Numbered from the stretch's first letter, positions 41,490 through 64,000 are shown. The stretch: 64,000 bases of DNA from Malacoraja senta (GCA_038087875.1 CM075994.1:8928001-8992000); one strand, 5' to 3'. Made by a program: numbers and translations. The notes: generated by a model not told the origin, from the letters alone.

Positions 41490-44101
41490 CCACTAAGGGG
41501 CAGAAAACGCTGGTGGGTGTTGTGTACAGGCCACCTAACAGTAGTAGTGAAGTTGGAGATGGTATCAAACAGGAACTTAGAAATGCGTGCAACAAAGGCA
41601 AAACAGTTATAATGGGTGACTTCAATCTACATATAGATTGGGTGAATCAAATTGGCAGGGGTGCTGAGGAAGAGAATTTCTTGGAATGTATGCGGGATAG
41701 TTATCTAAATCAACATGTAGAGGAACCAACGAGAGAGCAGGCTATTTTAGACTGGGTATTGAGTAATGAGGAAGGGTTAGTTAGCAGTCTTGTTGTGCGT
41801 GGCCCCTTGGGCAAGAGTGACCATAATATGGTTGAGTTCTTCATTAGGATGGAGAGTGACATCGTTAATTCAGAAACAAGGGTCCTGAACTTAAAGAAAG
41901 GTAACTTTGAGGGTATGAAACCGTGAATTGGCCAAGATAGACTGGCAATTGATTCTTTAAGGGTTGATGGTGGATATGCAATGTAAGGCATTTAAAGACT
42001 GCATGGATGAACTACAAAAATTGTTCATCCCAGTTTGGCAAAAGAATAAATCAGGGAAGGTAGTGCATCCGTGGATAACAAGGGAAATCAGGGATGGTAT
42101 CAAAGCGAAGGATGATGCGTACAAATTAGCCAGAAAAAGCAGCATACCGGAGGACTGGGAGAAATTCAGAGACCAGCAGAGGAGGACAAAGGGCTTAATT
42201 AGGAAAGGAAAAATAGATTATGAAAGAAAACTGGCAGGGAACATAAAAACTGACTGCAAAAGTTGTTATAGATATGTAAAAAGAAAGAGATTAGTTAAAA
42301 CAAATGTAGGTCCCTTGCAGTCCAGAAACAGGTGAGTTGATCATGGGGAACAAGGATATGGCGGACCAATTGAATAACTACTTTGGTTCCGTCTTCACTG
42401 AGGAAGACATAAATAATCTGCCGGAAATAGCAGGGGACCGCGGGTCAAAGGAGTTGGAGGAATTGAGTGAAATCCAGGTTAGTCGGGAAGTGGTTTTGGG
42501 TAAATTGAATGGATTAAAGGCCGATAAATCCCCAGGGCCAGATAGGCTGCATCCCAGAGTACTTAAGGAAGTAGCTCCAGAAATAGTGGATGCATTAGTA
42601 ATAATCTTTCAAAACTCTTTAGATTCTGGAGTAGTTCCTGAGGATTGGCGGGTAGCAAACGTAACCCACTTTTTAAGAAGGGAGGGAGAGAGAAAACGGG
42701 GAATTACAGACCAGTTAGTCTAACATCGGTAGTGGGGAAACTGCTAGAGTCAGTTATTAAAGATGGGATAGCAGCACATTTGGAAAGTGGTGAAATTATT
42801 GGACAAAGTCAGCATGGATTTACGAAAGGTAAATCATGTCTGACGAATTTTATAGAATTTTCGAGGATGTAACTAGTAGCGTGGGTAGGGGAGAATCAGT
42901 GGATGTGGTGTATCTGGACTTCCAGAAGGCTTTCGACAAGGTCCCACATAAGAGATTAGTATACAAACGTAAAGCACATGGCATAGGGGGTTCAGTATTG
43001 ATGTGCATAGAGAACTGGCTGGCAAACAGGAAGCAAAGAGTAGGAGTAAACGGGTCCTTTTCACAATGGCAGGCAGTGACTAGTGGGGTACCGCAAGGCT
43101 CAGTGCTGGGACCCCAGCTATTTACAATATATATTAATGACCTGGATGAGGGAATTGAAGGCAATATCTCCAAGTTTGCGGATGACACTAAGCTGGGGGG
43201 CAGTGTTTAGCTGTGAGGAGGATGCTAGGAGACTGCAAGGTGACTTGGAAGGGCTGGGTGAGTGGGCAAATGTTTGGCAGATGCAGTATAATGTGGATAA
43301 ATGTGAGGTTATCCATTTTGGTGGCAAAAACAGGAAAGCAGACTATTATCTAAATGGTGGCCGATTAGGAAAAGGGAGATGCAGCGAGACCTGGGTGTCA
43401 TGGTACACCAGTCATTGAAAGTAGGCATGCAGGTGCAGCAGGCAGTGAAGAAAGCGAATGGTATGTTAGCTTTCAAATCAAAAGGATTTGAGTACAGGAG
43501 CAGGGAGGTTCTACTGCAGTTGTACAGGGTCTTGGTGAGACCACACCTGGAGTATTGCGTACAGTTTTGGTCTCCAAATCTGAGGAAGGACATTATTGCC
43601 ATAGAGGGAGTGCAGAGAAGGTTCACCAGACTGAATGTCAGGACTGTCTTATGAAGAAAGACTGGATAGACTTGGTTTATACTCTCTAGAATTTAGGAGA
43701 TTGAGAGGGGATCTTATAGAAACTTACAAAATTCTTAAGGGGTTGGACAGGCTAGATGCAGGAAGATTGCTCCCGATGTTGGGGAAGTCCAGGACAAGGG
43801 GTCACAGCTTAAGGATAAGGGGGAAATCCTTTAAAACCGAGATGAGAAGAACTTTTTTCACACAGAGAGTGGTAAATCTCTGGAACTCTCTGCCACAGAG
43901 GGTAGTCGAGGCCAGTTCATTGGCTATATTTAAGAGGGAGTTAGATGTGGCCCTTGTGGCTAAAGGGATCAGAGGGTATGGAGAGAAGGCAGGTACGGGA
44001 TACTGAGTTGGATGATCAGCCATGATCATATTGAATGGCGGTGCAGGCTCGAAGGGCCGAATGGCCTACTCCTGCACCTAATTTCTATGTTTCTATGTTT
44101 C
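41490..44101 (+). mobile_element. CR1-clade LINE (HER1-like), long 5'-truncated copy with endonuclease and RT, frameshifted
   Basis: YRPPN and MGDFN (APE), QGSVLGP and FADD (RT); 3' tail (TTTCTATG)n; nested in an older CR1 tail at GGA^TATC. Confidence 0.92.
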
Positions 44102-44566
44102 TATCTTATTGAAGCATATAAGATTATTAAGGGTTTGGACACGCTAGAGGCAGGAAACATTTTCCCGATGTTGGGGGAGCCCAGAACAAGTGGCCACAGT
44201 TTAAGAATAAGGGGTAAGCCATTTAGAAGGGAGACGATGAAACACTTTTTCTCCCAGAGAGTTGTGATTCTGTGGAATTATCTGCCTCAGTGGGCGGTGG
44301 AGGCCGGTGCTCTGTATACTTTCAAGAGAGAGTTAGATATGGCTCTTATAGATAGCGGAGTCAGGGGATACGGGGAGAAGGCAGGAACGGGGTACTGATT
44401 GGGGATGATCAGCCATGATCACATTGAATGGCGGCGCAGGCTCGAAGGGCCGAATGGCCTACTCCTGCACCTGTTGTCTGTTGTCTATTGTCTATTGACC
44501 TACTCTGGGCAAGAGACTCTGTGCATCTACCCGATCTATTACTCTCTCTCGCTTCTTACTAAACAG

Positions 44567-44887
44567 GGGCGCGATCACTAAATGGCCAGGTTCAGCTGAC
44601 GCCAGATACGGCGAGACTGGTTGAAGGCGAGGTGCTGGTTATGAACTGTACCGCCGATATTGCAGGAGGCATGACCTTCACTTGGTATAAAGATGAGCGG
44701 GTGATTTCACAGAGCGCGCCGATGTACATCAACAGAGTGAGAGTGGGGCACCAAACCCTTAACAAAAAGCAGGTGGCATCGCTGAGCATCACCAAACTCA
44801 CCGAGTGCGATTCTGGGACCTATTACTGCAAAGTGGAGACCTTGGGAACCAATGTGAAGAGCAAAGGAACCAAAGTGACCGTAACGC
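44567..44887 (+). CDS. Gene B exon 2: Ig V-type (VJ) domain
   Basis: TACTCTCTCTCGCTTCTTACTAAACAG acceptor and C|GTAAG donor; open frame; 5 nt differences from gene A exon 2. Confidence 0.95.
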
Positions 44888-45519
44888 GTAAGCCTTTCTC
44901 TCAATGCNNNNNNNNNNNNNNNNNNNNNNNNNNNNNNNNNNNNNNNNNNNNNNNNNNNNNNNNNNNNNNNNNNNNNNNNNNNNNNNNNNNNNNNNNNNNN
45001 NNNNNNNNNNNNNNNNNNNNNNNNNNNNNNNNNNNNNNNNNNNNNNNNNNNNNNNNNNNNNNNNNNNNNNNNNNNNNNNNNNNNNNNNNNNNNNNNNNNN
45101 NNNNNNNNNNNNNNNNNNNNNNNNNNNNNNNNNNNNNNNNNNNNNNNNNNNNNNNNNNNNNNNNNNNNNNNNNNNNNNNNNNNNNNNNNNNNNNNNNNNN
45201 NNNNNNNNNNNNNNNNNNNNNNNNNNNNNNNNNNNNNNNNNNNNNNNNNNNNNNNNNNNNNNNNNNNNNNNNNNNNNNNNNNNNNNNNNNNNNNNNNNNN
45301 NNNNNNNNNNNNNNNNNNNNNNNNNNNNNNNNNNNNNNNNNNNNNNNNNNNNNNNNNNNNNNNNNNNNNNNNNNNNNNNNNNNNNTAGACAATAGACAAT
45401 AGGTGCAGGAGTCGGCCCTTTGGACCTTCGAGCCAGCACCGCCATTCAATGTGATCATGGCTGATCATCGCCAATCAGTACACCGTTCCTGCCTTCTCCC
45501 CATATCCCCTGACACCGCT

Positions 45520-48355
45520 GTAGAAACATAGAAACCTAGATAATAAGTGCAGGTGTAGGCCATTCGGCCCTTCGAGCCTGCACCGCCATTCAATATGATC
45601 ATGGCTGATCATCCAACTCAGTATCCTGTACCTGCTTTCTCTCCATACCCCCCGATCCCTTTAGCCACAAGGGCCACATCTAACTCCCTCTTAAATATAG
45701 CCAATGAACTGGCCTCAACTACCCTCTGTGGCAGAGAATTCCACAGATTCACATCTCTCTGTGTAAAAAATGAGTTTCTCATCTGGGTCCTAAAAGACTT
45801 CCCCCTTATCCTTAAACTGTGACCCCCTGTTCTGGACTTTCCCCACATCGGGAATAATCTTCCTGCATCTAGCCTGTCCAAGCCCTTAAGAATTTTGGAA
45901 GTTTCTATAAAATCCCCCCTCATTCTTCTAAATTCTAGCGAGTATAAGCCGAGTCTATCCAGTCTTTCTTCATATGAAAGTCCTGCCATCCCAGGAATCA
46001 GTCTGGTGAAACTTCTCTGTACTCCCTCTATGGCAGGAATGTCTTTCCTCAGATTAGGAGACCAAAACTGTACGCAATACTCCAGGTGTGGTCTCACCAA
46101 GACCCTGTACAACTTCAGTAGACCCTCCCTGCTCTTATACTCAAATCGTTTTGCTATGAATGCTAACATACCATTCGCTTTCTTCACTGCCTGCTGCACC
46201 TGCATGCCTACTTTCAATGACTGGTGTACCATGACACCCAGGTCTCGCTGCATCTCCCCTTTTCCTAATCGGCCACCATTCAGATAATAGTCTACTTTCC
46301 TGTTTTTGCCACCAAAGTGGATAACCTCACATTTATCCACATTATACTGCATCTGCCATGCATTTGCCCACTCACCCAACCTATCCAAGTCACCTTGCAG
46401 CCTCCTAGCATCCTCCTCACAGCTAACACTGCCCCCCAGCTTCGTGTCATCCTCAAACTTGGAGATGTTGCATTCAATTCCCTCGTCCAGACCATTAATA
46501 TATATTGTAAATAGGTGGGGTCCCAGCACTGAGCCTTGCGGTACCCACTAGTCACTGCCTGCCATTCTGAAAAGGACCCGTTTACTCCTACTCTTTGCTT
46601 CCTGTCTGCCAGCCAGTTCTCTATCCACATCAATACTGAACCCCCAATACAGTGTGCTTTAAGTTTGCATACTAATCTCTTATGTGGGACCTTGTCGTAA
46701 GACTTCTGAAAGTCCAGATATAACACATCCACTGGTTCTCCCTTATCCACTCTACTCGTTACATCCTCGAAAAATTCTATAAGATTCGTCAGATATGATT
46801 TGCCTTTCATAAATCCATGCTGACTTTGTCCAATGAATTCACCACTTTCCAAATGTGCTGCTATCCCATCTTTAATAACTGACTCTTGCATGTTCCCCAC
46901 TACCGACGTTAGACTAACTGCTCTGTAATTCCCCGTTTTCTCTCTCCCTCCCTTTTTGAAAAGCGGGGTTACATTAGCTACCCTCCAATCCTCAGGAACT
47001 GCTCCAGAATCTAAAGAGTTTTGAAAAATTATCACTAATGCATCCACTATTTCTGGGGCTACTTCCTTAAGTACTCTGGGATGCAACCTATCTGGCCCTG
47101 GGGATTTATCGGCCTTTAATCCGTTCAATTTACCTAACACCACTTCCCGGCTAACCTGGATTTCACTCAGTTCCTCCATCTCATTTGACACACGGTCCCC
47201 TGCTATTTCCGGCAGATTATTTATGTCTTCCTTAGTGAAGACATAACCAAAGTAGTTATTCAATTGGTCTGCCATGTCCTTGTTCCCCATGATCAATTCG
47301 CCTGACCTACATTTGTTTTAATTAATATTTTTCTCTTCACATATCTATAAAAACATTTGCAGTCAGTTTTTATGTTCCCTGCCAGTTTTCTTTCATAATC
47401 TATTTTCCCTTTCCTAATTAAGCCCTTTGTCCTCCTCTGCTGGACTCCGAATTTCTCCCAGTCCCCTGGTAGGCTGCTTTTTCTGGCTAATTTGTATGCT
47501 TCATCTTTTGTTTTGATACTATCCCTGATTTCCCTTGTTATCCACGGATGCACTACCTTCCCTGATTTATTCTTTTGCCAAACTGGGATGAACAATTGTT
47601 GTAGGTCATCCATGCAGTCTTTAAATGCCTTCCATTGCATATCCACCGTCAACCCTTAAAGAATCAATTGCCAGTGTATCTTGGCCAATTCACGTTTCAT
47701 ACCCTCAAAGTTACCTTTCTTTAAGTTCAGGACCCTTGTTTCTGAATTAACAATGTCACTCTCCATCCTAATGAAGAACTCAACCATATTATGGTCACTC
47801 TTTCCCAAGGGGCCACGCACAACAAGATTGCTAACTAACCCTTCATCATTACTCAATACGCAGTCTAGAATAGCCTGCTCTCTCGTTGGTTCCTCTACAT
47901 GTTGGTTTAGAAAACTATCCCGCATACATTCCAAGAAATCCTCTTCCTCAGCACCCCTGCCAATTTGATTCACCCAATCTATATGTAGATTGAAGTCACC
48001 CATTATAACTGTTTTACCTTTGTTGCACGCATTTCTAATTTCCTGTTTGATGCCTTCCCCAACTCCACTTCTACTACTGTTAGGTGGCCTGTACACAATT
48101 CCCACTAGCGTTTTCTGCCCCTTAGTGCTTCGCAGCTCTACCCATATTGATTCCACATCCTCCAAGCTAATGTCCTTCCTTTCTATTGCATTAATCTCCT
48201 CTCTAACCAGCTCCTTTTCCTTTCTGTCTATCCTTCCTGAATATTGAATATCCCTGGATGTTCAGCTCCCAGCCTTGGTCACCCTGGAGCCATGTCTCCG
48301 TGATCCCAACTATATCATATTCATTAATAACTGTCTGCACATTCAACTCATCCAC
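45520..48355 (-). mobile_element. CR1-clade LINE, long 5'-truncated copy, antisense, frameshifted
   Basis: Same APE and RT motifs on the minus strand (ORFs 47656-48165, 46292-47296, 45618-46529). Confidence 0.92.
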
Positions 48356-48889
48356 CATAATGATATGAAGCACTGTTGTGAAATGTAAAGCTTCCAAACT
48401 GACAGTCCACCATTGAATCAAATCCTAATTCTCTGCCTCAGAGGGCGGTGGAGGCCGGTTCTCTGGATACTTTCAAGAGAGAGCTAAATAAGGCTCTTAA
48501 AGATAGCGGAGTCAGGGGATATGGACAGAAGGCAGGAACGGGGTACTGATTGGGGATGATCAGCCATGATCACATTGAATGGCGGTGCTGGCTCGAAGGG
48601 CCGAATGGCCTCCTCCTGCACCTTTTGTCTATTGTCTATAAAATATTTGATTGAATGGGAACCTTGTGAACTCTGTGCAGACTTCCGGCTTGAAGGCTTT
48701 GCCTTGTGCTAAACGGTATTCCCCTATCATGTAACTCTACACTGTAAATGGCTCGATTGTAATCATGTGTTGTCTTACTGCTGACTGGTTAGCACGCAAC
48801 AAAAGCTTTTCACTCGGTACACGTGACAATATACTAATCTGAACTAAATATTTGCGGGAAGACTGATGTTTGTTTGATTAATATTTTAG

Positions 48890-49021
48890 GTGCCTCCTCT
48901 CAGACTGTTGCTTCGTGCCAACCCATTAACATTATATTCATTGGAATATCTGTTGGAGTAGGGGCTGCACTGGTGATCGCATTAATTATTGTGTCTCTGC
49001 GACTTCGGCGAAGCATTAAAG
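48890..49021 (+). CDS. Gene B exon 3: stalk and transmembrane; read-through into the intron gives GMVVE* (TGA 49036-49038)
   Basis: ATTTTAG acceptor and G|GTATGG donor; 3 nt differences from gene A exon 3. Confidence 0.9.
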
Positions 49022-49039
49022 GTATGGTCGTAGAGTGAT

Positions 49040-50110
49040 CGAGTGATGCAGCGTGGAAACAGGCCCTTCAGCCCAACTTGCCCATACCGGCAGCTACACT
49101 AGTCCCACCTATCTGCGTTTGGCCCATATCCATCTAAACCCTCCATCATAGATTAATAGAGTGATGCAGTGTGGAAACAGGCCCTTCAGCCCACCTTGCC
49201 CACACTGGCCAACATGCCCCAGCTACACTCGTCCCATCTGCCCACATTTGGCCCATATCCATCTAAACCCTCTATCATAGATTCATAGAGTGATACAGTG
49301 TGGAAACAGGCCCTTCGGCCCAACTTTCCCACACCGGCCAACATGCCCCATCTACACTAGTCCCTCCTGTCCACGTTTGGCCCATATCCCTGTATACCCT
49401 CTATCATAGATTCAGAGAGTCATAGTGATGCAGGGTGGAAACAGGCCCTTCAGCCCAACTTGCCCACACCGGCCAAAATGCCCCATCCACACTAGTCCCA
49501 CCTGCCCGCGTTTGGCCCATATCCCTCTAAGCCCTCTATCATAGATTCATAGAGTCATAGAGTGATACAGTGTGGAAACAGGCCCTTCAGCCAAACTTGA
49601 CCACACTGGCCAAATTGCCCCATCTACACTAGTCCCACCTGCCTGTGTTTGGCCCATATCTCTCTAAACCCTCTAGCATAGAGTCATAGAATGATGCAGT
49701 GTGAAAACAGGCTCTTTGGCCCAACTTGCGCACACCGGCCAACATGCCCCATCTACACTAGTCCCACCTGCCCGGGTTTGGCCCATATCCCTATAAACCC
49801 TCTATCATAGATTTATAAAGTGATATAGTGTGGAAACAGGCCCTTCAGCCATACTTGCCCACATTGGCCAACATGTCCCAGCTCCACTAGTCGCACCTGC
49901 CTGCCTTTGGCCCGTATGCCTGTAAACCCTCTATCATAGATTCATAGAGTGATACAGTGTGGAAACCGGCCCTTCAGCCAACACTGGCCAACATGCCACA
50001 GCTACACTAGCCCTATCTGCCCACTTTTGGCCCATATCCCTCTAAACCGGCTATCATAATCATAGCGTGATGCAGTGTGGAAACAGGCCCTTCAGTCCTA
50101 CTTGCCACCA
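49040..50110. repeat. Tandem array of ~120-135 bp CR1-3'UTR-derived units (9 GGAAACAGGCCC anchors)
   Basis: Anchors near 49055, 49171, 49301, 49436, 49573, 49701, 49831, 49960 and 50077. Confidence 0.85.
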
Positions 50111-51729
50111 CTGGCCAACAGGTCCCAGCTGACTGATGAAGGCCAATGTACCGAAAGCCTTTTTGACCACCCTATCTACCTGCGATGCCACTTTCAGGGA
50201 ACTATGCACCTGAACTCGGAGATCCCTCTGATCTGCAACACTCCCCAGAGCCCTACCATTCACCATGAAGGTCTTGCCCATGTTAGACTTCTCAAAATGC
50301 AACACCTCACGCATGTCTCAGCTGTCCATTTACCTAACTGTTTCTTAAACGTTGGGATAGTCCCAGCCTCAACTACCTCCTTAGGCAGCTTGTTCCATAC
50401 ACCCACCACCCCCTGCGTGAAAAAGTTACCCCTCAGATTCCTTTCCCCCTTCACCTTAAACCTATGTCCTTTGCTTCTCGATTCCCCTACTCTGGGTAAG
50501 GGATTCTGTGGATCCACCTGATCTATTCCTCTCATGATTTTCTGGATCCGTCAAACTTACTGGAATGGCTTACCCCTGATTCTTAAACCGCCGTCCCTGG
50601 TTCTGGACTCCCCCAAACATCGGAAACACGATTCCTGCCTCTAGCGTGTCCAATCTCTTAATAATCTTATATGTTTCAATAAGATCCCTCTTGAAAGCAT
50701 CCAGAGAATCGGCCTCCACTGCCATCTGAGATACCAAATGGTGAACTACCAAATAGTGAAAGGCTTGGATCCAGTGGATGAGGAGAGGATGTTTCCACCA
50801 GTGGAAGAGCTTCGAACTAGAGGTCTCTCAGAATTAATTCCCTCAGAATTAAGGGACGTACCTTTAGGAAGGAGATGAGGATGAATTTCTTTAGTCAGAG
50901 GGTGGTGAATCTGTGGAATTCTTTGCCACAGAAGGCTGTGGGCCAAGTCAGTGGATATTTTTTAAGGCAGACGTTGGCAGATTCTTGATTAGTACGGGTG
51001 TCAGGGGTTATGGGGAGAAGGCAGGAGAATGGGGTTAGGAGGGAGAGATAGATCAGCCATGATTGAATGGCAGAGTAGACTTGATGGCCCGAATGGCCTG
51101 ATTCTGCTCCTATCACGTTTGACCTTATGACCTTATTGATTAAATTGCCAGCTCTGGAGGGTGTCTGAAGAAGGGTCTCGACCCGAAATGTTACCTTTTC
51201 TCCAGAGATGCTGCCCGTCCCGCTGAGTTACTCCAGCACTTTGTGTCTTTTTCCATCTATCGCTTGACAGGCTTTGTCCGCCCCCCCCCCCACCCAACAT
51301 CTCTTCCAGCTTGATTGAGGAGGAACTGCAGATGCTGGCTTAAACCGTAGCACAAAAGGCTGGAGTAGCTCAGCGGGACAGGCAGCATTTCTGGAGAGAA
51401 GGAATGGGTGTTGTTTCGGGTCGAGACCCTTCCCACCCCCACTCTGTAGCAGGGTCCTAACACGAAACTGTTTTTTTGCGTCTACCTATGTCCTGTTTCT
51501 GAGCTGTAAAGTCCTGTTCTGTTGACGCTGCAAACCAGATGCCTGCCTGGCTCTTTTGCAAACACTATTTTAGTTTTTTTGCTTGTTTGCGTTATAATCA
51601 GTTGCAGAACAGCTATTGGGAGAGGCGTGGGCTTGTTTCTCGAAGACCAGCTGCATGATGTGCAGTCCCCACTGGATTTCCTTGGTGTTTGTGTGTGCGT
51701 GTGTGTGTGTCCTGCCTTTTCTGTGTGTG

Positions 51730-52485
51730 GCCAATTAGGAAAAGGGGAGATGCAACGAGATCTGGGTGTCATGGTACACCAGTCATTGAAAGTAGGAATG
51801 CAGGTGCAGCAGGCAGTGAAGAAAGCGAATGGTATGTTAGCATTCATAGCAAAAGGATTTGAGTATAAGAGCAGCGAGGTTCTACTGCAGTTGTACAGGG
51901 TCTTGGTGAGACCACACCTGGAGTATTGCGTACAGTTTTGGTCTCCTAATCTGAGGAAAGACATTCTTGCCATAGAGGGAGTACAGAGAATGTTCACCAG
52001 ACTGATTCCTGGGATGGCAGGACTTTCATAAGAGGAAAGAGTGGATAGACTCGGCTTGTACACGTTGGAATTCAAAAGTCTGAGGGGGGATCTTATAGAA
52101 ACTTACAAAATTCTTAAGGGGTTGGACAGGCTAGATGCAGGAAGATTATTCCCGATGTTGGGGAAGTCCAGAACTAGGGGTCACAGTTTAAGAATAAGAG
52201 GGAAGACTTTTAGGACCGAGATGAGGAAATGATTTTTTACACAGAGAGTGGTGAATCTGTGGAATTCTCTGCCACATAAGGTAGTTGAGGCCAGTTCATT
52301 GGCTATATTTAAGAGGGAGTTAGATGTGGCCCTTGTGGCTAAAGGGATCAGAGGGTATGGAGAGAAGGCAGGGATGGGATACCGAGTTGGATGATCAGCC
52401 ATGATCATATCAAATGGCGGTGCAGGCTCGTAGGGCCGAATGGCCTACCCCTGCACCTATTTTCTATGTTTCTATATTTCTATGT
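51730..52485 (+). mobile_element. CR1 3' portion
   Basis: GKGEMQRDLG...; ORFs 51522-52031 and 52041-52232. Confidence 0.85.
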
Positions 52486-52500
52486 TTCTGTTTTCTCTGG

Positions 52501-52962
52501 TAGTCTTGACAACTATCGCGTATTAGCCGGGACAACCCGTATATTGGGCTAAATTGGTTTGTCCCGTACGGGACCGTCCTTGTCCCGTATTTGACTGCTA
52601 CTACTCGGGTCGAGGTGACTGTCGGGTCGGAGCGCCGCGTCCGGCCCCGCCTCACCAGCGCCTCGCCCGTGGCCCCGTCCGACCTTCAGACCTTCGCTAA
52701 CCGCCGACACCACCACCACCCCTCCTTGTCACGGCCGATCATCGGTTCGTGAGTTGGACGGCGCGCCGGACTTTGCGCGCGGCCCCCGGGCCAAAACTCC
52801 TCAGCTGGCCCGCCGGCTGGGCTTTGTGTGCAGTCCAGCACCCGGGGCCAACTCATCATTCACCCAGCCACGACCGAGTCGGTCAACGGATTGCCGTGGG
52901 GAATTTGTCCCGTGTTTTGACCTTTTGTCCCTTATTTGGGAGTGAAACAGTTGGTGACCCTA
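52501..52962. mobile_element. MITE with degenerate TAGGGTTGCCAAC-type TIRs
   Basis: TAGTCTTGACAACT ... AGTTGGTGACCCTA; GGGACA/TGTCCC subterminal motifs. Confidence 0.55.
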
Positions 52963-53149
52963 CGTCTCTGGTGGCCCGTGGGCCTGGAATGCAGCAAAGG
53001 TGATGTGAATAAGATAATTCTCTATTCTCTGGAATTTGGAAGGATGAGAGGTTATCTTATAGAAACATATCAATTTCTTAAGGGATAGGACAGGCTGGAT
53101 GCAGGAAAAATGTTCCTAATGTTGGGAGAGTCCAGAGCCAGGGAGACAC

Positions 53150-53465
53150 TGCGGTCACAGTGGCGCAGCGGCAGAGTTGCTGCCTTACAGTGAATTTAGC
53201 GCCGGAGACCCGGGTTCGAACCCGACTACGGGTGCTGTCTGTATGGAGTTTGCACGTTCTCCCCGTGACCTGCGTGGGTTTTGTCCGAGACCTTCTGTTT
53301 CCTCCCACACTCCAAAGACGTACAGGTTTGTAGGTTAATTTGCTTAGTAAATGTAAAAATTGTCCCTAGTGGGTGTAGGATGGTGTTGTGTGCGGGGATC
53401 GCTGGTCGGCGAGGACCTAGTGGGCCAAAGGGCCTGTTTCTGCGCTGTATTTCTAAACTAAACTA
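53150..53465 (+). mobile_element. tRNA-derived SINE (HE1/V-SINE-like)
   Basis: A/B boxes and (CTAAA)n tail. Confidence 0.85.
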
Positions 53466-53586
53466 AAAATAAATGGGTAGGCCATTTTGGACTGAGATGA
53501 GGAAACCACTTTTTGTGAATCTGTGGAATTCTCTGCCACAGCAGGCAGTGGAGGCCAATTCACTGGATGTTTACAAGAGAGAGTTA

Positions 53587-53863
53587 CGGGCCTGTCCCAC
53601 TTGCCGATTTTTTAGGCGAATGCCGGCATCATTGACTGACTATCAGGTCACCGAAAAAGTCGCGGCGTGACGCGGCGTGATGACGTATGATGCGACGTGA
53701 TGCGGCATGATGACGTATTGACACTCGGTGTCTCAAGTGTCGTAACATTTTTTTTGTCGCCGCTGGATCTTTGAAATGTTCAAAATCTTTCAGAGACCCT
53801 GATACGTCAGTCAATGACGCCGGCAGTCGCCGAAAAAAAAAATCGACAAGTGGAACAGGCCCT
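53587..53863. mobile_element. PIF/Harbinger-like MITE
   Basis: TIRs GGGCCTGTCCCACTTG / CAAGTGGAACAGGCCC; TTA on both flanks (53584-86, 53864-66); internally palindromic. Confidence 0.8.
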
Positions 53864-54307
53864 TTACATTTAGCTGTCAGGGCTAAGGGAATCAAGGGAT
53901 ATGCGGAGAACGGGGGTACTGATTCTGGATGATCAGCCACGATCATATTGAATTTTTTCACACAGAGAGTTGTGAGTTTGTGGAATTCTCTGCCTCACGG
54001 CAGAGAGAGGAAATGATACACAGTTGTGCATGTTAACCACAAACAGATGGGGCCCCGGTCAACTCGGGGATACAATCTGCAAGTGGGAATAAGAGGGGGG
54101 AGAAATGCTGCAGAGAGAGCTGAGGAATAGGAACATAGAAACAAAGAAAACAGGTGCAGGAGGCCAGTTCCTCTCTCTGCCGTGAAGGCCAGTTCTCTGG
54201 AATCTTTCAAGAGAGACCTAGATAGGGCTCTTAAAGAGCGGAGTCAGCGGATAAGGGGAGAAGGCAGGAACGGGGTGCTGATTGGGGATGATCAGCCACG
54301 ATCACAT

Positions 54308-54745
54308 TGAATGGCGGTGCTGGCTTGAAGGGCCGAATGACCTACTCCTGCACCTGTTGTCTATTGTCTATTGTCTATTGAATGGCGCTGCTGGCTTGAA
54401 GGGCCGAATGGCCTACTCCTGCACCTATTGTCTATTGTCTATTGTCTTTTGTCTATTGTCTATTGTCTATTGAATGGCAGTGCTGGCTTGAAGGGCCGAA
54501 TGGCCTACTCCTGCACCTATTGTCTATTGTCTATTGTCTATTGTCTATTGTCTATTGTCTATTGAATGGCAGTGCTGGCTTGAAGGGCCGAATGGCCTAC
54601 TCCTGCACCTATTGTCTATTGTCTATTGTCTATTGAATGGCAGTGCTGGCTTGAAGGGGCCGAATGGCCTAACCCTGCACCTATTGTCTATTGTCTATTG
54701 AATGGCGGTGCTGGCCTGAAGGGCCGAATGGCCTCCTGCACCTGT
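54308..54745. repeat. Six tandem copies of a LINE terminal unit with variable (TTGTCTA)n
   Basis: GAATGGC.GTGCTGGCTTGAAGGGCCGAATGGCC repeated near 54308, 54380, 54472, 54564, 54635 and 54700. Confidence 0.85.
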
Positions 54746-56883
54746 TGTCTTTGTTTCTATGTTCCTATTCCTCAGCTCTCTCTGCAGCATTTCTCCCCCC
54801 TCGTATTCCCACTTGCAGATTGTATCCCCGACCTTTGACCGGGGCCCCATCTGTTTGTGGTTAACATGCACATCTGTGCATAATTTCCTCTCTCTGCCGT
54901 GAGGCTTCCTGCCAAAGGAGATTTCGCTGCGCTTTTAGCTGAGTTTGGAGTTGCAGCATGGAAATGGGCCCTGAGTCCACACCGACCTTCGATCACCCGT
55001 GTTCACTCGAGTTCTATGTTATCCCACTTTCTCATCCGCACCAGCGACAATTTTACAGAGGGTGAATTTACCTACAAACTCGGGCCTGCAGGGATTTAAA
55101 ATGAAGCGATCGATGGCTTTACATTGCAGATGGACACTAATTGTTGGAGTAACTCAGCGGGTCAGGCAACGATAGAGCTGTTTCGCTTCCACGAATTGCT
55201 CAGTGTGTTCCCCTTTCTGCAGAACCCCCCTTTCTCCAGAAAAATCGGGTTGTCAGAGTTTCACTTCTGCGCCGGGATGCACTTGCAGAGGAGCTTAACA
55301 TACAAATCAAACGAGAAGCACTTTGCAATTTTCACAAGTTCCAGGAGTAGAATTAGGCCATTCGGCCCATCAAGTCTACCCCGCCATTCAACCATGGCTG
55401 ATCTATCTCTCCCTCCGAACCCCATTCTCCTGATTTCTCCCCATAATCTCTGCGGGTTGCTGCCTTCCAGCGAATCATCGACCCGGGTTCTATCCCGACT
55501 ACGGGTGCTGTCTGTGCGGAGTTTGTACGTTCTCCCCGTGACGTGCGTGAGTTTTCTCCGAAATCTTCGGTTTCCTCCCACACTCCAAAGACGTGCAGGT
55601 TTGTAGGTTAATTGGCTTGGTAAATGTAAAACATTGTCCCTAGCGGGTGCAGGATAGTGTTAACGTGTGGAGATCGCTGGTCGGCGAGGACCCGGTGGGC
55701 CGAAGGGCCTGTTTCTGTGCTAAATAATCCCTTAAGAATTTTATATGTTTCTATAAAATCTCCTCGCATCCTTCTAAACTCCAGAGTATACAAGCCCAGC
55801 CGCTGCATTCTCTCAGCATATGACAGCCCCGCCATTCCGGGAATTAACCTGGTGAACCTACGCTGCACTCCCTCAATAGCAAGAATGTCCTTCCTCAAAT
55901 TAGGCGACCAAAACTGCACACAATACTCCAGGTGTGGTCTCTAGTGGGTGTAGGATAGTGTTAATGTGTGGGGATCGCTGGTCGGCGCGGACCCGGTGGG
56001 CCGAAGGGCCTGTTTCCGCGCTGTATCTCTAAACTAAACTAAAGAAAAGCTTTTCACTGTACCTCGTTACACGTGACGCCAAGCTAAACTCAAACACCAA
56101 TTTTATGTTTCAGGTGGACACCGTGAAGAGCATACTACAGGAGTTCCATAGAAACATAGAAACATAGAAACTAGGTGCAGCAGGAGGCCATTCGGCCCTT
56201 CGAGCCAGCACCGCCATTCATTGTGATCATGGCTGATCGTCCCCAATCAATAACCCGTGCCTGCCTTCTCCCCATATCCCTTGACTCCACTAGCCCCTAG
56301 AGCTCGATCTAACTCTCTCTTAAATCCATCCAGTGATTTGGCCTCCACTGCCCTCTGTGGCAGGGAATTCCATAAATTCACAACTCTCTGGGTGGAAACG
56401 TTTTTTCTCACCTCAGTCTTAAATGGCCTCCCCTTTATTCTAAGACTGTGTGTGGCCCCTGGTTCTGGTCTCGCCCAACATTGGGAACTTTTTTCCTGCA
56501 TCTAGCTTGTCCAGTCCTTTTATAATGTTATATGTTTCTATAAGACCTCCCTCATCCTTCTAAACTCCAGTGAATACAAGCCTAGTCTTTTCAATCTTCG
56601 GTCTGTCGCTAGTTAACTGCCAGAGATTCTGTTTTATTAAAAATCGCTGCAAGTGCCGGAAAGGAAATTAGAAATATTTCGAGTATTCCTACCATCTGGA
56701 ATCGACTACCTGGGAGAAGACGACGGAATCTGACTTTTAACCAGAGCTTGCAGAGTGCAATTGATAAAACCAATATCAAGCACGTTTTCTCACTTTAATA
56801 GACAGTAGGTGCAGGAGGAGGCCATTCGGCCCTTCGAGCCAGCACCGCCCATCACTGTGATAGGGTTTTTAAAAATAACGGAG

Positions 56884-57360
56884 TGTTATGCGCTCCCTCT
56901 GCTGGTGTTAATTATGTACTAACCTGTTTCTCTGATTACCATTAGTACCTCCTGCTGCCTGGCTGCTCCTGACCTGTTTGGAGGCTCCTGGCCCAAGCTG
57001 CATCACGTGAGCCTGATGACGGAGCCTCAGCTTAAAAAGACCATGTGACTGGCAGTCTCCCCCTCAGACTGGTGGCAGCAGTCTGGTGTTGGTTTCGTTT
57101 GTTTGATTGCATAGTGTTCTTTATGTAACTCTTCAATCTGTATTAACTTATTTTGCTTGGGAAGGATGGGACTGGCATTATTGTTTTCGTAGTTTTGCTT
57201 CAGGTTTATTTTAACACTGAGGCAGGTTTAGAGTCTCTGGTCCGACGGCCCATTGAGTGGTCGGCCAGAGCACCCTTTATCTTTTGTTTGATAGCCCATC
57301 CGACCCCCCCTCTGTTTGTTTGATCCATGTTTAGGTATTTTTGTTAGTGAAAAAAAATAA
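56884..57360 (+). repeat. 5' LTR (3' end and PBS apparently missing)
   Basis: Aligns to the 3' LTR up to TTAGTGAAAAA..ATAA, then diverges. Confidence 0.8.
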
Positions 57361-57420
57361 TTTTGTGGTTCTAGTAACCTGTTGTTTTGGCTATTTTGGT
57401 AGCATTTGTGAGCAGGAAAA

Positions 57421-58632
57421 ATGGAATTTAAGGTGGAAGAGTTTGTTGAGACTCCTAGCCTAGAGATGTTTCATCAATGTACTAAGAAAAATTTAGTGTT
57501 GCTTGCAGATAAATATGGCGTTTCTATTAATAAACAGGCAAACAAACAGTCAATTAAGACGTTGTTATGGACTGCTTTGGTAGACCAAGAGGTGTTGCCT
57601 AGTAGTCCTGACAGTCATAAATCTATACAGCCAGTTCAGAACATGGAGGACGTCATTAAACTGAAGGAGATGGAGCTTGAGTCACAGAGAATGGCCTTAA
57701 AAAAGGATGAGCTCATGCATGTTCTTGAAATGAAACGGCTTGAACTTGAGGAGGAAACCAAAAGGGCTGAATTTCAGCTGCGGGAGAAAGAATTAGATAT
57801 TTCCCGGTTCTCTTCTAAAGAGCATGAGTTTGATGTGAGCAGAAATATTCGTTTGGTTCCACCGTTCAGTGAAAAAGAGGTTGATAAATATTTCACTTTG
57901 TTTGAGCGTGTGGCTATATCACTGAAATGGCCTAAGGGCGTGTGGACATTGCTGTTGCAATGCGTCCTTGTTGGTAAAGCGCGTGAGGTATATTCGTCAT
58001 TGTCTGTAGACAATAGCCTTGACTATGAAATTGTAAAATCTGCCGTCCTCAGAGCGTATGAGTTGGTTCCCGAAGCGTACCGGCAAAAATTCCGGCGTTT
58101 CAGAAAATATGATAACCAAACATATGTTGAATTTGCTCGCGAAAAGGAGGCTCTGTTTGAACGCTGGTGTGCTTCTCAGGGGGTAAAAGATTTTGCCCAG
58201 TTAAAGTCCTTGGTGTTAATGGAGGATTTTAAAAACTGTCTTCCTGAAAGAGTAACAACATATCTTAATGAGCAGAAAGTCTCAGACGTGTCTAAGGCCG
58301 CTGTATTGGCGGATGAATATGTGCTCACTCATAAGGCAGTTTTTGGGGAGCGATCCTCTGGTTTTAGTGGGAGACCAGTTGATCGTGGTGGTGTTGCTGG
58401 TAACAGTATAAAAACTTTTTCTGTGCCAGTTGATAGCAGCACTTCAAAGCAGTGGGAAGTCAAACCTGATAAAACTGACAGTGATTTGGGGGCTAAGGAC
58501 AGTCCAATGTGTTTCTACTGTAAGGAGAGAGGGCACATTTGTAAAACGTGTCCCATTCTTAAAAAGAAAAAAAGCGGAGCCGGTGGTTTTGGTCAACACA
58601 CAGAAGGCACATGCAATCCCTGTGGTGCCTGA
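57421..58632 (+). CDS. Gypsy gag ORF (403 aa): capsid/SCAN-like region and CCHC zinc knuckle
   Basis: Uninterrupted ORF; FERVA..WPK..W, AYELVPEAYRQKFR and CFYCKERGHICKTC motifs. Confidence 0.85.
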   Translation: MEFKVEEFVETPSLEMFHQCTKKNLVLLADKYGVSINKQANKQSIKTLLWTALVDQEVLPSSPDSHKSIQPVQNMEDVIKLKEMELESQRMALKKDELMHVLEMKRLELEEETKRAEFQLREKELDISRFSSKEHEFDVSRNIRLVPPFSEKEVDKYFTLFERVAISLKWPKGVWTLLLQCVLVGKAREVYSSLSVDNSLDYEIVKSAVLRAYELVPEAYRQKFRRFRKYDNQTYVEFAREKEALFERWCASQGVKDFAQLKSLVLMEDFKNCLPERVTTYLNEQKVSDVSKAAVLADEYVLTHKAVFGERSSGFSGRPVDRGGVAGNSIKTFSVPVDSSTSKQWEVKPDKTDSDLGAKDSPMCFYCKERGHICKTCPILKKKKSGAGGFGQHTEGTCNPCGA

Positions 58633-60160
58633 GACTGATGATTTGGTGGATTTTTCTCCTTTTGTCATGAGGGGTTTTGTGTCTATGGAGGATGGGGACA
58701 GTAAAGTACCTGTGACAATCTTGCGTGATACTGCTGCCTCTCAGTCCTTCATTTTGGAAGATGTGCTACCATTTTCAGCTGAATCATCTGTTGGTTCTAG
58801 TGTCCCAGTTGTAGGGTTTGGTATGGAGGGCATGGGAGTGCCATTGCATACTGTTAACCTTGAGTCTGAGCTTGTTTCGGGTCGAGTAGCTGTGGGGATA
58901 CGGCCACGTTTTCCCATAAAGGGAGTGTCGTTGATTCTGGGTAACGATTTGGCTGGGGGGAAAGTTTTGGTCACTCCTGTTGCAATGTCCAGATAAATGT
59001 CCAGATAAACTTGCTGAGCAGCATCCAAAAGTTTTTGCATCATGTGTTGTCACTCGCGCTATGGCTAGAAACCAAGCTACGTTTGATGATGAAATTGACT
59101 TGAGTGAGTGTTTCCTTGTGGATCAGGATGGTGGATCCTGTGTTGCGCAGGGTGTGTCTGCATCACAAGTTGGTGACATGTCTGAGACTAAACCGGTGCC
59201 GTTGTCACGTGACCAGTTGGTTGCTGAGCAGAAATGTGATGCCGATTTGTCTGCTTTGATTGACAGCGCAGTGTCAGAGGTGGAAGTGGATTCCTTGTCA
59301 AAGGGATATTTTCTGAGGGATAACTTGCTAATGCGTAAATGGTCTCCTTTGAATGCATCTGGTCAGGATGACTGGAGCGTTGTTAAGCAGATTGTAGTGC
59401 CACATAGGTATCGGAATGAAATACTTACTTTGGCTCATGATAATCCTCTTGCTGGCCATTTAGGAGTTAATAAAACATACGACCGTATATTACGACATTT
59501 CTTTCGGCCTGGGTTAAAGAGGGATGTAGTGCAGCATTGCAAGTGTTGTCATGCATGCCAAGTAGCAGGTAAACCGAACCAGACTATCGTTCCTGCACCC
59601 TTGTATCCGATACCTGTAGTTGGTGAACCTTTTGAACGTATTATGATAGACTGTGTGGGTCCACTGCCTCGAACGAAAGCTGGCAACAAGTTTTTGTTAA
59701 CCATAATGTGTGTCAAACTGTTTTTGAACAAACTAAGAGCCTTCTTGTGTGCGCACCCGTGCTTGCAGCACCCGATTTTGAACGGCCGTTTAAGTTGGCA
59801 GTTGATGCTAGTGACAGTGGAGTTGGTGGAGTTCTTCTGCAAGATGGTTCTGATGGGGTGGAACATCCAGTTTCATACTTTTCTAAAAAGTTTAATCGCC
59901 ATCAGAAATGGTACTCTACCATCGAAAAAGAAACTCTTGCGATGATAATGGCTCTAGATCATTTTGAGGTTTATGTTGGTTCCTCGAATGTTCCCGTCGT
60001 CGTATACACAGATCACAATCCGCTGGTGTTCTTAAATAGGATGAGAAATAAAAACCGACGGTTAATGAGCTGGAGTTTACAGTTGCAGGGCTACAATCTG
60101 GAAGTCAGGCATATCCGTGGCAGGGATAATGTCTTGGCTGACGCATTGTCGCGCCAGTGA
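58570..60160 (+). pseudogene. Disrupted pol: protease, partial integrase and RNase H in shifted frames
   Basis: ILRDTAASQS (PR); AHDNPLAGH...CKCCHAC and IDCVGPLP (INT); VDASDSGVG...TDHNPL...ADALSR (RNase H); frame breaks near 58570 and 58980; deletion at ~59710. Confidence 0.85.
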
Positions 60161-60245
60161 TGTCTGAGCTACTAAATAGTTTCTGAAATTTGGTGGTGGT
60201 CTTTATTTTATTTTCAGAAACATATTCAGTAACTTATGGTGGGGG

Positions 60246-60824
60246 TGTTATGCGCTCCCTCTGCTGGTGTTAATTATGTACTAACCTGTTTCTCTGATTA
60301 CCATTAGTACCTCCTGCTGCCTGGCTGCTCCTGACCTGATTGGAGGCTCCTGGCCCAAGCTGCATCACGTGAGCCTGATGACGGAGCCTCAGCTTAAAAA
60401 GACCATGTGACTGGCAGTCTCCCCCTCTATCTCTCTCTTCCCCCTCAGACTGGTGGCAGTAGTCTGGTGTTGGTTTAGTTTGTTTGATTGCATAGTGTTC
60501 TTAAATAAGTCTTCTGTAAATAAGTCTGTATTAACTTATTTTGCTTGGGAAGGATGGGACTGGCATTATTGTTTTCGTGGTTTTGTTTCAGGTTTATTTT
60601 AACACTGAGGCAGGTTTAGAGTCTCTGGTCCGACGGCCCATTGAGTGGTCGGCCAGAGCACCCTTTATCTTTTGATTGCTAGCCCATCCGACCCCACCCC
60701 CTCTGTTTGTTTGATCCAGGTTTTAGTTCTTTTTGTTAGTGAAAAATAAATAATATTTCCATTTGAACCTGGTTTTGTATTATGTTATTGGCCTTTGAGG
60801 TATTTAACTTTGGCGGCCGTATCA
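60246..60824 (+). repeat. 3' LTR (TG...CA)
   Basis: TGTTA start and GGCCGTATCA end. Confidence 0.8.
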
Positions 60825-61189
60825 GGGGATATGGGGAGAAGGCAGGAACGGGGTACTGATTGGGGATGATCAGCCATGATCACATTGAATGGCGGTGCTG
60901 GCTCGAAGGGCAGAATGGGCTCCTCCTGCACCTATTGTCTATTGTCTATTGTTACATTATTTTCAGAACAAAGTCTGAAATTAGTTTTGCATCGCAGCAG
61001 CTCCATTTACAGCATCACATAAAATATAAAAGTGACTTGAAAAGTCATGCATTAAGACATCAAGATAGGACCCAAAAATACATACATTCAACACAACATT
61101 ACAATAACAGAAGACGACATCTGAGGCCCATCAGCGTGCATTTGATCTGGGATTAAGCGCCGCATTTAGTTCGAGGATTGACTGGTGCA

Positions 61190-62055
61190 TAGATACATAG
61201 ATACATAGAAATTAGGTGCAGGAGTAGGCCATTCGGCCCTTCGAGCCTGCACCGCCATTCAATATGATCATGGCTGATCATCCAACTCAGTATCCCGTAC
61301 CTGCCTTCTCTCCATACCCCCTGATCCCTTTAGCCACAAGGGCCACATCTAACTCCCTCTTAAATATAGCCAATGAACTGGCCTCAACTACCCTCTGTGG
61401 CAGAGAGTTCCAGAGATTCACCACTCTCTGTGTGAAAAAGTTTTTCGTAATCTCGGTCTTAAAGGATTTCCCCCTTATCCTTAAGATGTGACCCCTTGTC
61501 CTGGACTTCCCCAACATCGGGAACAATCTTCCTGCATCTAGCCTGTCCAACCCCATAAGAATTTTGTACGTTTCTATAAGATCCCCTCTCAATCTCCTAA
61601 ATTCTAGCGAGTATAAGCCAAGTCTATCCAGTCTTTCTTCATATGAAAGTCCTGACATCCCAGGAATCAGTCTGGTGAACCTTCTCTGCACTCCCTCTAT
61701 GGCTATAATGTCCTTCCTCAGATTTGGAGACCAAAACTGTACGCAATACTCCAGGTGTGGTCTCACCAAGACGCTGTACAACTGCAGTAGAACCTCCCTG
61801 CTCCTATACTCAAATCCTTTTGCTATGAAAGCTAACATACCATTCGCTTTCTTCACTGCCTGCTGCACCTGCATGCCTACTTTCAATGACTGGTGTACCA
61901 TGACACCCAGGTCTCGCTGCATCTCCCCATTTCCTAATCGGCCACCATTTAGATAATAGTCTGCTTTCCTGTTTTTGCCACCAAAGTGGATAACCTCACA
62001 TTTATCCACATTATACTGCATCTGCCAAACATTTGCCCACTCACCCAGCTCATTC
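61190..62055 (-). mobile_element. CR1 3' portion
   Basis: ORF 61287-62057 (256 aa). Confidence 0.88.
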
Positions 62056-62677
62056 AAGAGCCCTCCCGAGTTTTAAAACATTCAAACTCGTGGAAGCACG
62101 TAGAATGCACGCAGCAGGCACGTCGGAGCTCGGGGACGTCTGTTAGCGGCTCGTAACGCTAACGGCAGGTACTCGGGAAACGCGGTAAGCTCGGGAAGAC
62201 TCGTGAAGATTTTTCAACATGTTGAAAAATGTCCACGACAGCCCGAGTACCTACGAGCGGCCATTACCGTAAAAGTTCATTCAAGAGTTCTTCCGAGTTT
62301 CCCCTGATTCGAACTCGGACATTTACGGTAATGGACGCTCGTAGGTACTCGGAGCTCCGTGGACATTTTTCAACATGTTGAAAAATCTTCACGAGTCTTC
62401 CCGAGCTTCAACATGTTGAAAAATCTTCAAGTCCTCCTGAGCTTAGCGCGTTTCCCGAGTACCTGCCGTTAGCGTTACGAGCTGCTCAGAGACGTCCCCG
62501 AGCTCCGACGTACCCGCTACGTTAATTCTCCGTGCTTACCACGAGTCTGATTTTTTTTTAAATCTCGGGAGAGCATTTGAAAGAACTCGTACAGTTGGAC
62601 AGGGCTTTTAAATCTCCGAGTTCGAATCAGGGCAAACTCGGGAAAACTCTTGCATGAACTCGTACAGTGGGACAGCG
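62055..62677. mobile_element. Palindromic MITE-like element(s), same TIR family
   Basis: Extensive internal inverted repeats; ends GAACTCGTACAGT(T/G)GGACAG twice. Confidence 0.6.
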
Positions 62678-63150
62678 TCATAACCTTATTAAATTTTGGA
62701 ACTTTATATCTCCGGTTTGATGGTAACAAATTGTACTCACAGTTCAGAACTTGGTTGGGGTCAGAAGAAATATTGTTGGCCATCCTTGGTATGTTTTTAT
62801 GGTAGGATGATTCATAAAATTTCTGAAGTGGTTGACCTACAATCTTTGAGCAGATTTTTAATTGTTGGAGCAGTTTTCATTTTGTAGTAACAGACAAACT
62901 CATGTACCATGTAAGCTCACAGTACTGCAAAACACTTATTATCACAGCGGTAAAAAATAATAAAAGGATTTGTCTACTTGCTCCGAAAGATCTAAGTCGG
63001 CGGAGAAACCAGATTCTTTGCGTTGTCTTATTGCAAATCTTATTAATGTGGTCATTCCATGATAAATGATGACCTATCCTTACCCCCAAGCATTTAAATG
63101 AAAATACCTGCTTGATTTTTTCATAATGGATAACAAGAGAAACATTATGA
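62517..63150 (-). mobile_element. Degenerate Rex1-like LINE fragment adjacent to or split by MITE sequence
   Basis: FKCLGV..LSWNDHI..RIWFLRRLRSFG; LLPSNRRYKVP. Confidence 0.6.
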
Positions 63151-63459
63151 GAGTCAGATGGTGAACCAAATACATAGAAACATAGAAAATAGGTGCAGGA
63201 GGAGGCCATTCTGCCCATCGAGCCAGCACCGCCATTCATTTGGAATTCTCTGCCTCAGAGGGCGGAGCAGGCAGGTTCTCTGGATGCGTTCGAGAGGGCT
63301 AGATAGGGCACTTAAAAATAGAGGAATGAGGGGATATGAGGAGAAGGCAGGAACGGGGTACTGATTGGGGATGATCAGCCATGATCACATGGAATGGCGG
63401 CGTTGGCTCGAAGGGCCGAATAGCCTACTCCTGCACCTATTGTCTATTGTCTATTGTCA

Positions 63460-63905
63460 TTGTGATCATGGCTGATTGTCCCCAATCAATAACCCGTGCC
63501 TGCCTTCTCCCCATATCCCTTGATTCCACCAGCCCCTAGAGCTCTATCTAACTCTCTCTTAAATCCATCCAGTGATTTGGCCTCCACTGCCCTCTGTGGC
63601 AGGGAATTCCCCAAATTCACAACTCTCTGGGTGAAAACGTTTTTTCTCACCTCAGTGCTAAATGGCCTCCCCTTTATTCTAAGACTGCGGCACCTGGTTC
63701 TGGACTCGCCCAACATTGGGAACATTTTTCCTGCATCTAGCTTGTCCAGTCCTTTTTATAATTTTATATGTTTCTATAAGACCCCCCCTCATCCTTCTAA
63801 ACTCCAGTGAATACAAGCCTAGTCTTTTCAATCTCTCCTCATATGACAGCCCCGCCATCCTAGGGATCAATCTCGTGAACCTACGCTGCACTGCCTCCAT
63901 CACAA
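63460..63905 (-). mobile_element. CR1 3' end
   Basis: ORFs 63486-63725 and 63679-63903. Confidence 0.8.
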
Positions 63906-64000
63906 GAAGTAGAGAATTGTCTCTCTTGCCTATGCAAGCTTTTTACCGCTCACCCGCACCGCAGGATCTGTTAATAATGCTCCATATTTAACCACGAACT

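Follow-up and report, generated by a model that had tools for sequence, protein, structure and literature searches.

A truncated, inverted duplicate of an NCR3/NKp30-family gene in the skate Malacoraja senta

The window analysed here, a 64,000-nucleotide (64-kb) stretch of the genome of the skate Malacoraja senta (GCA_038087875.1 CM075994.1:8928001-8992000), contains two predicted genes for immunoglobulin (Ig) domain receptors of the NCR3/NKp30 family. One of them, gene A, lies on the minus strand and is complete; the other, gene B, lies on the plus strand and duplicates part of gene A in inverted orientation. The two genes stand head to head, and 11.2 kb separate their start codons. The original prediction for this locus held that gene B appears to lack the signalling tail of gene A, and that the two genes might thus form a pair of signalling and decoy receptors.

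The rebuilt model of gene A comprises a leader exon, a variable (V) domain exon and a stalk/transmembrane (TM) exon, followed by four small cytoplasmic exons (Table 1). Once spliced, its tail is encoded in frame as RLRRSIK-DCLGLQ-RQFLQYIAEKST-DYMIMDEEKKHK-PKGNT...NVQ-stop, and its DYMIM motif has a single occurrence in the window (11348-11362, minus strand). Gene B retains counterparts of the first three exons, all of them open in frame, and its five splice sites are all canonical and intact. The 5' flank of gene B presents 91% identity with positions 26121-25140 of gene A in inverted orientation, with a divergence of ~5%. The coding part begins with a start codon and a plausible signal peptide, and ends in a TM donor without a cognate acceptor. 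The V domains of A and B are identical at 103 of 106 residues, and their TM exons differ at 3 of 132 nt, resulting in one residue change (V to I), with the stalk Cys common to both. This layout, with one germline-joined VJ-type V domain followed by a stalk and a TM segment in one small exon, is that of elasmobranch NCR3. The TM helix of gene B, INIIFIGISVGVGAALVIALIIVSL, contains no charged residue.

Table 1. Features of the Malacoraja senta window and the evidence on which they were placed.
Feature	Position	Strand	Evidence or remark
Putative promoter and 5' untranslated region (UTR) of gene B	35497..36395	+	Duplicated from A upstream region
Leader exon, gene B (MHLRSLALFIFLWCFAIR)	36396..36450	+	Phase 1, donor GTAAG, aligned to A leader 25230-25176
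V exon, gene B (VJ-type Ig domain)	44567..44887	+	Frame open, acceptor and donor canonical
Stalk (with Cys), TM and RLRRSIK exon, gene B	48890..49021	+	Phase 1 at both ends, donor G/GTATGG intact
Predicted read-through of gene B TM donor	49022..49038	+	G-MVVE then TGA at 49036-49038; 174 aa, tail-less
A/B gene-conversion tract	44372..44907 (A 21911-21375)	+	195 nt of intron 1 and whole V exon, to N run
Transposable element, 3'-truncated in B	49028..50541	+	Eight 129-bp tandem units at 49091-50130 (TRF)
End of A/B homology	50541..50549	.	Six-way alignment; inside transposable element in intron 3
Post-breakpoint repeat mosaic, no receptor exon, no N run	50550..64000	.	Within-window copy-number profile, open reading frames (ORFs), Pfam
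Inverted repeat, ~175-nt arms	53992-54166 / 54729-54905	right arm +	Arms 96-98% complementary, 562 nt between
Long terminal repeat (LTR) retroelement remnants	57421-60160	.	Pfam: SCAN-like gag, integrase zinc-binding domain, RNase H
Gene A, 234 aa, 7 exons	25230..6343	-	Spliced tail in frame, aligned with shark and ray NCR3
Gene A leader exon	25230-25176	-	Rebuilt gene model
Gene A V exon	21715-21395	-	Rebuilt gene model
Gene A stalk/TM exon	19555-19424	-	Rebuilt gene model
Gene A four small cytoplasmic exons	14279-14261, 14094-14060, 11361-11327, 6450-6343	-	Rebuilt gene model
Six element copies	1936-2747, 12192-11632, 24315-23755, 39440-39979, 19417-17957, 49028-50541	.	Within-window comparison

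The only product predicted by the gene B sequence is a 174-aa receptor with a cytoplasmic stub of 12 residues. As had been proposed, reading through the TM donor of gene B leads to a TGA after GMVVE, at a codon that is TCA in gene A. This TGA (49036-38) is derived in gene B, the codon being TCA also in the little skate (Leucoraja erinacea). The contrast between TGA and TCA is a weak argument: the difference carries little weight because the read-through of gene A itself ends quickly, encoding GMVVESSSDAA before a stop located six codons further on, and the contrast was hence rejected as evidence of design. Downstream of the TM exon of gene B, the first canonical poly(A)-type hexamers are located at 51139 and 53468.

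The family of both genes was established through an exhaustive representative search, followed by searches with the sawfish protein as query. The representative search returned a 209-aa little skate protein (XP_055486896.1, LOC129694204) with 68% identity, together with relatives from sawfish and basking shark. The sawfish query matched a single protein in each of ten further shark and ray species, including nurse shark NCR3 (QTT61902.1 / A0A8A9WR54), whose entry name is natural cytotoxicity triggering receptor 3. Because the V domain of gene B matches this nurse shark protein with 43% identity (E = 2e-27), A and B are assigned by homology to the elasmobranch NCR3/NKp30 family, the family name being taken solely from the nurse shark entry. 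In the family alignment, 24 columns of the V domain are invariant; among them are the TECD and Y.C motifs that surround the second Cys, and the G-T within a J-like G-T-x-V motif. The V exon of gene B ends in a J-like GTKVTVT. Nurse shark NCR3/NKp30 was reportedly the subject of a 2021 study by Kinlein et al. in Immunogenetics (73:333).

Other searches were less specific. The V domain of gene B returned no match in protein collections within a length range of 58-185 aa, the little skate protein matched only itself and two Mobula proteins, and neither A nor B of this genome was represented by a protein or transcript model in the protein collections searched. Single-sequence and profile searches against PDB sequences matched generic V and I-set domains (titin, T-cell receptor (TCR) alpha, light chains and VNAR), with NKp30 outside the best 60, and searches of Atlas and NCBIfam with the V domain or its relatives yielded generic Ig matches or none, with no NKp30 label. 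No major histocompatibility complex (MHC) marker gene was detected within the window.

The cytoplasmic tails were aligned for 12 shark and ray NCR3 relatives, the twelfth of which (the little skate model) ends in an intron read-through. A full tail is present in 11 of the 12, with a core (KACIALQRQFVxYITEKS) that hardly varies all the way from nurse shark to stingrays. Rays add to this tail a T-E-Y-[ML]-[KR]-[IMV] motif resembling an immunoreceptor tyrosine-based switch motif, which takes the form T-D-Y-M-I-M in this skate, whereas sharks present a C-terminal DYVH (DYVHxGR) instead. The conserved core and a basic KKKKRK stretch are both found in gene A and in 11 relatives, and are absent from gene B and from positions 50542-64000. 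To judge by this alignment, the tail that gene B has lost is an old and strongly conserved signalling module. Gene B shares with nurse shark NCR3 the VJ-type V domain, the short stalk, the uncharged TM segment (IGVSxGVxAxL) and the basic stop-transfer sequence, and gene A shares the nearly invariant tail as well. Gene B, in contrast, ends after the stop-transfer sequence, without the CIALQRQFVxYITEKS, the KKKKRK and the C-terminus common to all full-length relatives retrieved. Because the conserved cytoplasmic tail is absent, gene B classifies as a truncated derivative of a family member, and not as a full member. Within the window, the original prediction was right on the near-identical ectodomain and on the lack of a Tyr motif and a signalling tail in gene B. 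Reading the lost motif specifically as a CD28-like YxxM site for PI3K fits only the skate sequence, and it is safer to describe the motif as one part of a deeply conserved tail.

The homology between both genes consists of collinear inverted blocks that run from A 26121..18417 to B 35497..50541, with extra repeat insertions in gene B between the blocks; the last homologous block pairs B 49547-50541 with A 19417-18417. This block ends inside a transposable element that starts, in all three of A, B and the little skate, ~6-8 nt past the TM donor. Because the same insertion is found in the little skate, the insertion of the element is older than the split between these skate species. The element contains 129-bp tandem units, eight of them in B and about four in A. 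In a six-way alignment, the copy in gene A and four others can be followed in register for 100 nt or more past the breakpoint, whereas gene B switches to an unrelated repeat. The truncation of gene B is a true rearrangement breakpoint inside the transposable element, and the end of homology, which had been put near 50543, was placed by this alignment at 50541-50549. Two copies of the element lie in intron 1, and each of the two NCR3 genes has one directly behind its TM donor.

Nothing of the missing part of the gene was detected past the breakpoint. Neither the rest of the element, nor the unique intron-3 DNA of gene A, nor exons 4-7 are present in 50542-64000, the range up to the window end over which the tail exons of gene B were sought. 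A sensitive BLASTN search with A 18417-6300 against this range matched only repeat fragments and no copy of exons 4-7, while TBLASTN searches with seven shark, ray and skate relatives placed the tail exons at the positions of gene A only. A motif scan of the three forward frames of 50542-64000 identified no tail-like peptide or TxY-type motif, except for two chance matches in repeats. The window, which is repeat-rich, contains six runs of N, the last of which ends at 45385, and 48890-64000 is free of gaps. The earlier statements that the 15 kb downstream contain no gap and no copy of exons 4-7 were hence both confirmed. The downstream DNA is a mosaic in which fragments of short and long interspersed nuclear elements (SINE and LINE) are combined with an inverted repeat and with scrambled remnants of LTR retroelements. 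These observations bear directly on the alternative that gene B is a complete gene, with cytoplasmic exons located beyond 64000 or with novel, non-homologous exons in the 13.5 kb past the breakpoint. The donor at 49021 is intact and the window does end 13.5 kb past the breakpoint, but intron 3 of gene A spans only 5.1 kb, the remainder of the element and all the unique intron-3 DNA of A are missing, the downstream DNA is composed of unrelated repeats rather than a single insertion, and no frame encodes a conserved tail peptide. We therefore consider this alternative improbable.

A second splicing outcome had been put forward for gene B, using an acceptor at 54817-54818 with the same junction bases as exon 4 of gene A. 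The string TTGCAG/ATTGT is present at 54813-54822, but it falls in the right arm of an inverted repeat, and the 10-mer TTGCAGATTG at the proposed acceptor (54817/54818) has a twin on the minus strand (54082-54073). With flanks that lack homology to exon 4 of gene A, the site was rejected as a relic of this exon, and as an acceptor it amounts to a chance match within the inverted repeat. Between the arms of the repeat (54306-54754) lie SINE-tail tandem arrays with periods of 71, 92 and 7 nt (CTATTGT), and the inverted repeat itself might represent either a foldback element or a palindromic duplication of recent date.

The locus of the little skate (L001) provided a reference for dating the duplication. 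It is collinear with gene A, and its positions 10001-15563 correspond to the LOC129694204 / XP_055486896.1 gene model. Exons 4-6 were located downstream of the annotated stop of this model (19818-19877, 20011-20062 and 21357-21416), at a distance of 4-6 kb. Because L001 is collinear with gene A and contains these exons at 95-100% identity, it was taken as the orthologue of gene A. The only RefSeq model of this orthologue is a 40-codon read-through of intron 3 into the same element; it is probably a prediction that skipped exons of 19-35 nt, or possibly a real tail-less isoform. Over four blocks, noncoding divergence between A and B amounts to 2.3-4.8%, against 7-10.6% for each of them to the little skate. 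Since the former is below the latter, the duplication is by this measure younger than the split from the little skate, unless the two copies have been homogenised throughout. The other elasmobranchs presented one match per species in the search with the sawfish query.

On approaching the V exon from its 5' side, the divergence between A and B drops sharply, from 13.7% to 0.9%, while still 195 nt short of the exon. No differences occur in these last 195 intronic nt (P ~8e-6), against 37 in the preceding 270 nt, and the tract as a whole contains 5 differences in 536 nt, compared with ~29 expected at a noncoding divergence of 5.5% (P ~4e-8). The V exons are nearly identical, but the likeness continues through the adjoining 195 nt of intron, a pattern that points to gene conversion and not to coding constraint. 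The 3' end of the tract is obscured by N runs in both copies. These runs (21093-21368 in A and 44908-45385 in B) start 20-27 nt past the V exon donor, at equivalent sites of intron 2. Purifying selection on the V and TM exons was considered on the basis of a pooled test (8 of 453 versus 194 of 3726 sites, P = 5e-4) and rejected, the signal coming wholly from the conversion tract, intron included.

Outside the tract, the exons of gene B present no excess conservation. The TM exon (3/132) diverges as its immediate flanks do, and the leader exons are unusually divergent, differing at 10 of 55 nt, compared with ~5% in their flanks (P = 6e-4); five of these differences are derived in gene B. The leader differences are split evenly between A and B, and the residues stay hydrophobic throughout. 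When polarised with the little skate, the 18 exon differences between A and B divided into 9 derived in A and 9 derived in B. Because of this 9:9 division, and because the TM exon behaves as its flanks, exon divergence appears to give no sign of selection on gene B. Between the two skates, the V exon (21395-21715 versus L001 13070-13390) presents 40 nonsynonymous and 8 synonymous differences, for a ratio of nonsynonymous to synonymous rates (dN/dS) of ~1.5. Its synonymous divergence (dS 0.117) is slightly above the intron divergence of 7-10.6% to the little skate. By these estimates, the ligand-binding domain of skate NCR3 is under diversifying selection, and this fast-evolving V domain contrasts with the nearly frozen tail that gene B has lost.

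Sequencing runs provided a check on the assembly. Contigs from four runs (X1, X13, X7 and X2) over 44400-49150 are repeat-dominated, low-pass DNA, and they are regarded as genomic because they cross exon-intron boundaries without splice joints. Run searches with the V exon of gene B, and with its leader and 5' UTR, matched only unlabelled or DNA runs. A 261-nt contig of run X1 (48802-49062), which spans the TM exon and both its boundaries, matches gene B at 260 of 261 positions, with gene A differing at 8. An X1 contig for the V exon matches gene B at 3 of 4 diagnostic sites, and the assembly differs from it at 2 positions. B-type sequence exists outside the assembly consensus, with run X1 possibly deriving from the same sample as the assembly. 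It is accordingly very improbable that the truncation of gene B, or gene B itself, is an assembly artefact generated by a false duplication or by a mis-join in the repeated element. The breakpoint does follow closely on a 1-kb tandem array within a multi-copy element, and N runs occupy equivalent places directly behind the V exon in both genes. Yet A and B are ~5% apart and separated by several repeat insertions, far beyond what is expected of haplotypes, no N run occurs in 45386-64000, and the X1 contig contains the diagnostic bases of gene B over the TM exon and both boundaries, even if this run may share the assembly sample.

On balance, we regard gene B as a probable signalling-dead by-product whose use to the animal is unproven, derived from gene A by a young, lineage-specific partial duplication in inverted orientation. 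Gene B retains from gene A the upstream region, exons 1-3 (leader, V and stalk/TM) and the initial 1.5 kb of intron 3. The duplicated segment breaks off inside the transposable element, and the four small tail exons are therefore absent. With no cognate acceptor for the TM donor, transcripts of gene B, if made, would run into intron 3, translation would end at the TGA after five read-through codons (49036), and polyadenylation would take place at a downstream signal, for which 51139 and 53468 are candidates. Lacking a splice junction downstream of the stop, such a transcript would not be an obvious target of nonsense-mediated decay. The resulting protein would combine the ligand-binding domain of A, the stalk Cys, an uncharged TM segment and the 12-residue stub, with no capacity to signal via the family tail. 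Without a charged TM residue, it would also have no obvious means to recruit adaptors containing an immunoreceptor tyrosine-based activation motif (ITAM). Such a product could still bind the ligand of A, and its only possible roles would be to absorb this ligand or to pair with A as a dead partner. Because its exons change at the rate of their surroundings, gene B is most likely a not-yet-decayed by-product of birth-and-death in a receptor cluster.

Several results weigh against this interpretation. The absence of a tail for gene B was read only as far as 64000. All five residue changes derived in gene B are conservative, replacing one hydrophobic residue with another. In addition, a simple simulation yielded P ~0.14 for exons 1-3 and splice sites remaining intact in the B lineage under neutral decay, which represents a mild sign of constraint, although this probability would be higher if conversion had recently refreshed the V exon. 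The last two results are among those that agree with gene B encoding an expressed and selected tail-less receptor, acting as a decoy or as a dominant-negative partner of A through the stalk Cys, with its V domain homogenised by conversion. We regard this alternative as a reasonable hypothesis, but a less likely one. It would account for the fact that gene B is intact from its upstream region, ATG and signal peptide through to the V and TM exons, with all five splice sites, but the youth of the duplicate makes such intactness weakly informative. Conversion has acted on precisely the ligand-binding exon, and the dN/dS of ~1.5 for this exon between skates implies that active homogenisation would be required to keep both V domains matched; conversion tracts, however, occur between genes and pseudogenes as well, and the TM and leader exons present no excess conservation. 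The B-derived TGA trims the read-through tail encoded by the element to 5 residues, and the sole RefSeq model in the little skate likewise describes an intron-3 read-through form of the orthologue, but this model may have skipped the micro-exons of 19-35 nt located downstream in L001. Finally, with no charged TM residue, gene B is not itself a classical activating partner. The fuller proposal of a tail-less NCR3/NKp30 gene that is co-expressed with the signalling gene, has its V domain matched to it by conversion and damps its signalling, either by soaking up ligand or as a dead, disulfide-linked partner, appears unlikely on the present data.

No NK-cell receptor other than NKp30/NCR3 can, to our knowledge, be followed from sharks through to humans, and we know of no study of the long tail of shark and ray NKp30, a tail left almost unaltered over several hundred million years. 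Other receptor systems present partial parallels. Siglec-5/14 and Siglec-11/16 are paired receptors in which gene conversion is limited to the ligand-binding exons. As in these pairs, A and B are neighbouring paralogues with a homogenised 5' ligand-binding exon (44372-44907) and differing 3' signalling parts; unlike gene B, which has the uncharged TM segment of A, the Siglec partner has a charged TM segment and signals through DAP12. IL-1R2 and TRAIL-R3/R4 are membrane decoy receptors without a signalling domain that are old, conserved and expressed. If expressed, gene B would resemble them in combining a full ligand-binding ectodomain with a membrane anchor and no tail, but their function has been demonstrated, whereas gene B is a young partial duplicate known from sequence. 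Recent segmental duplications that break in repeat DNA and lose 3' exons are shared with the KIR and Ly49 clusters, from whose partial duplicates gene B differs in keeping every retained exon and splice site and in exchanging sequence with its parent.

In mammals, the NKp30 splice isoforms a, b and c arise through alternative splicing of exon 4 in one gene, and signalling proceeds via a charged TM residue and CD3-zeta (PMC12272517). The genes described here belong to the same family by the naming of the depositors, and share with mammalian NKp30 the use of one V domain with differing intracellular ends that alter the signalling outcome. They differ in that the mammalian TM segment has a charged Arg and pairs with CD3-zeta/FcR-gamma, whereas the TM segment here is uncharged; in that the skate tail is long and self-contained; and in that the tail-less form is a separate, truncated gene copy, not a splice isoform. 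Should gene B prove to be a decoy, it would represent a gene-encoded counterpart of the mammalian isoforms and, if expressed, an early example of decoy-type regulation in an NK receptor family. If gene B is a relic, it records the growth of a receptor cluster through an inverted duplication that broke in a transposable element and was followed by gene conversion. A copy with the ligand-binding part and without the tail would offer a ready-made natural experiment on tail function. In either case, the finding is a modest, locus-level result and does not define a new kind of system.

Beyond the receptor genes, Rfam returned no match in the whole window. Within the LTR-retroelement remnant in the downstream mosaic, a gag-like ORF of 403 aa encodes a SCAN-type capsid domain, and no reverse-transcriptase core is recognisable. 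Its flanks at 57000-57400 and 60200-60800 are single-copy-like and may correspond to the LTRs of the element.

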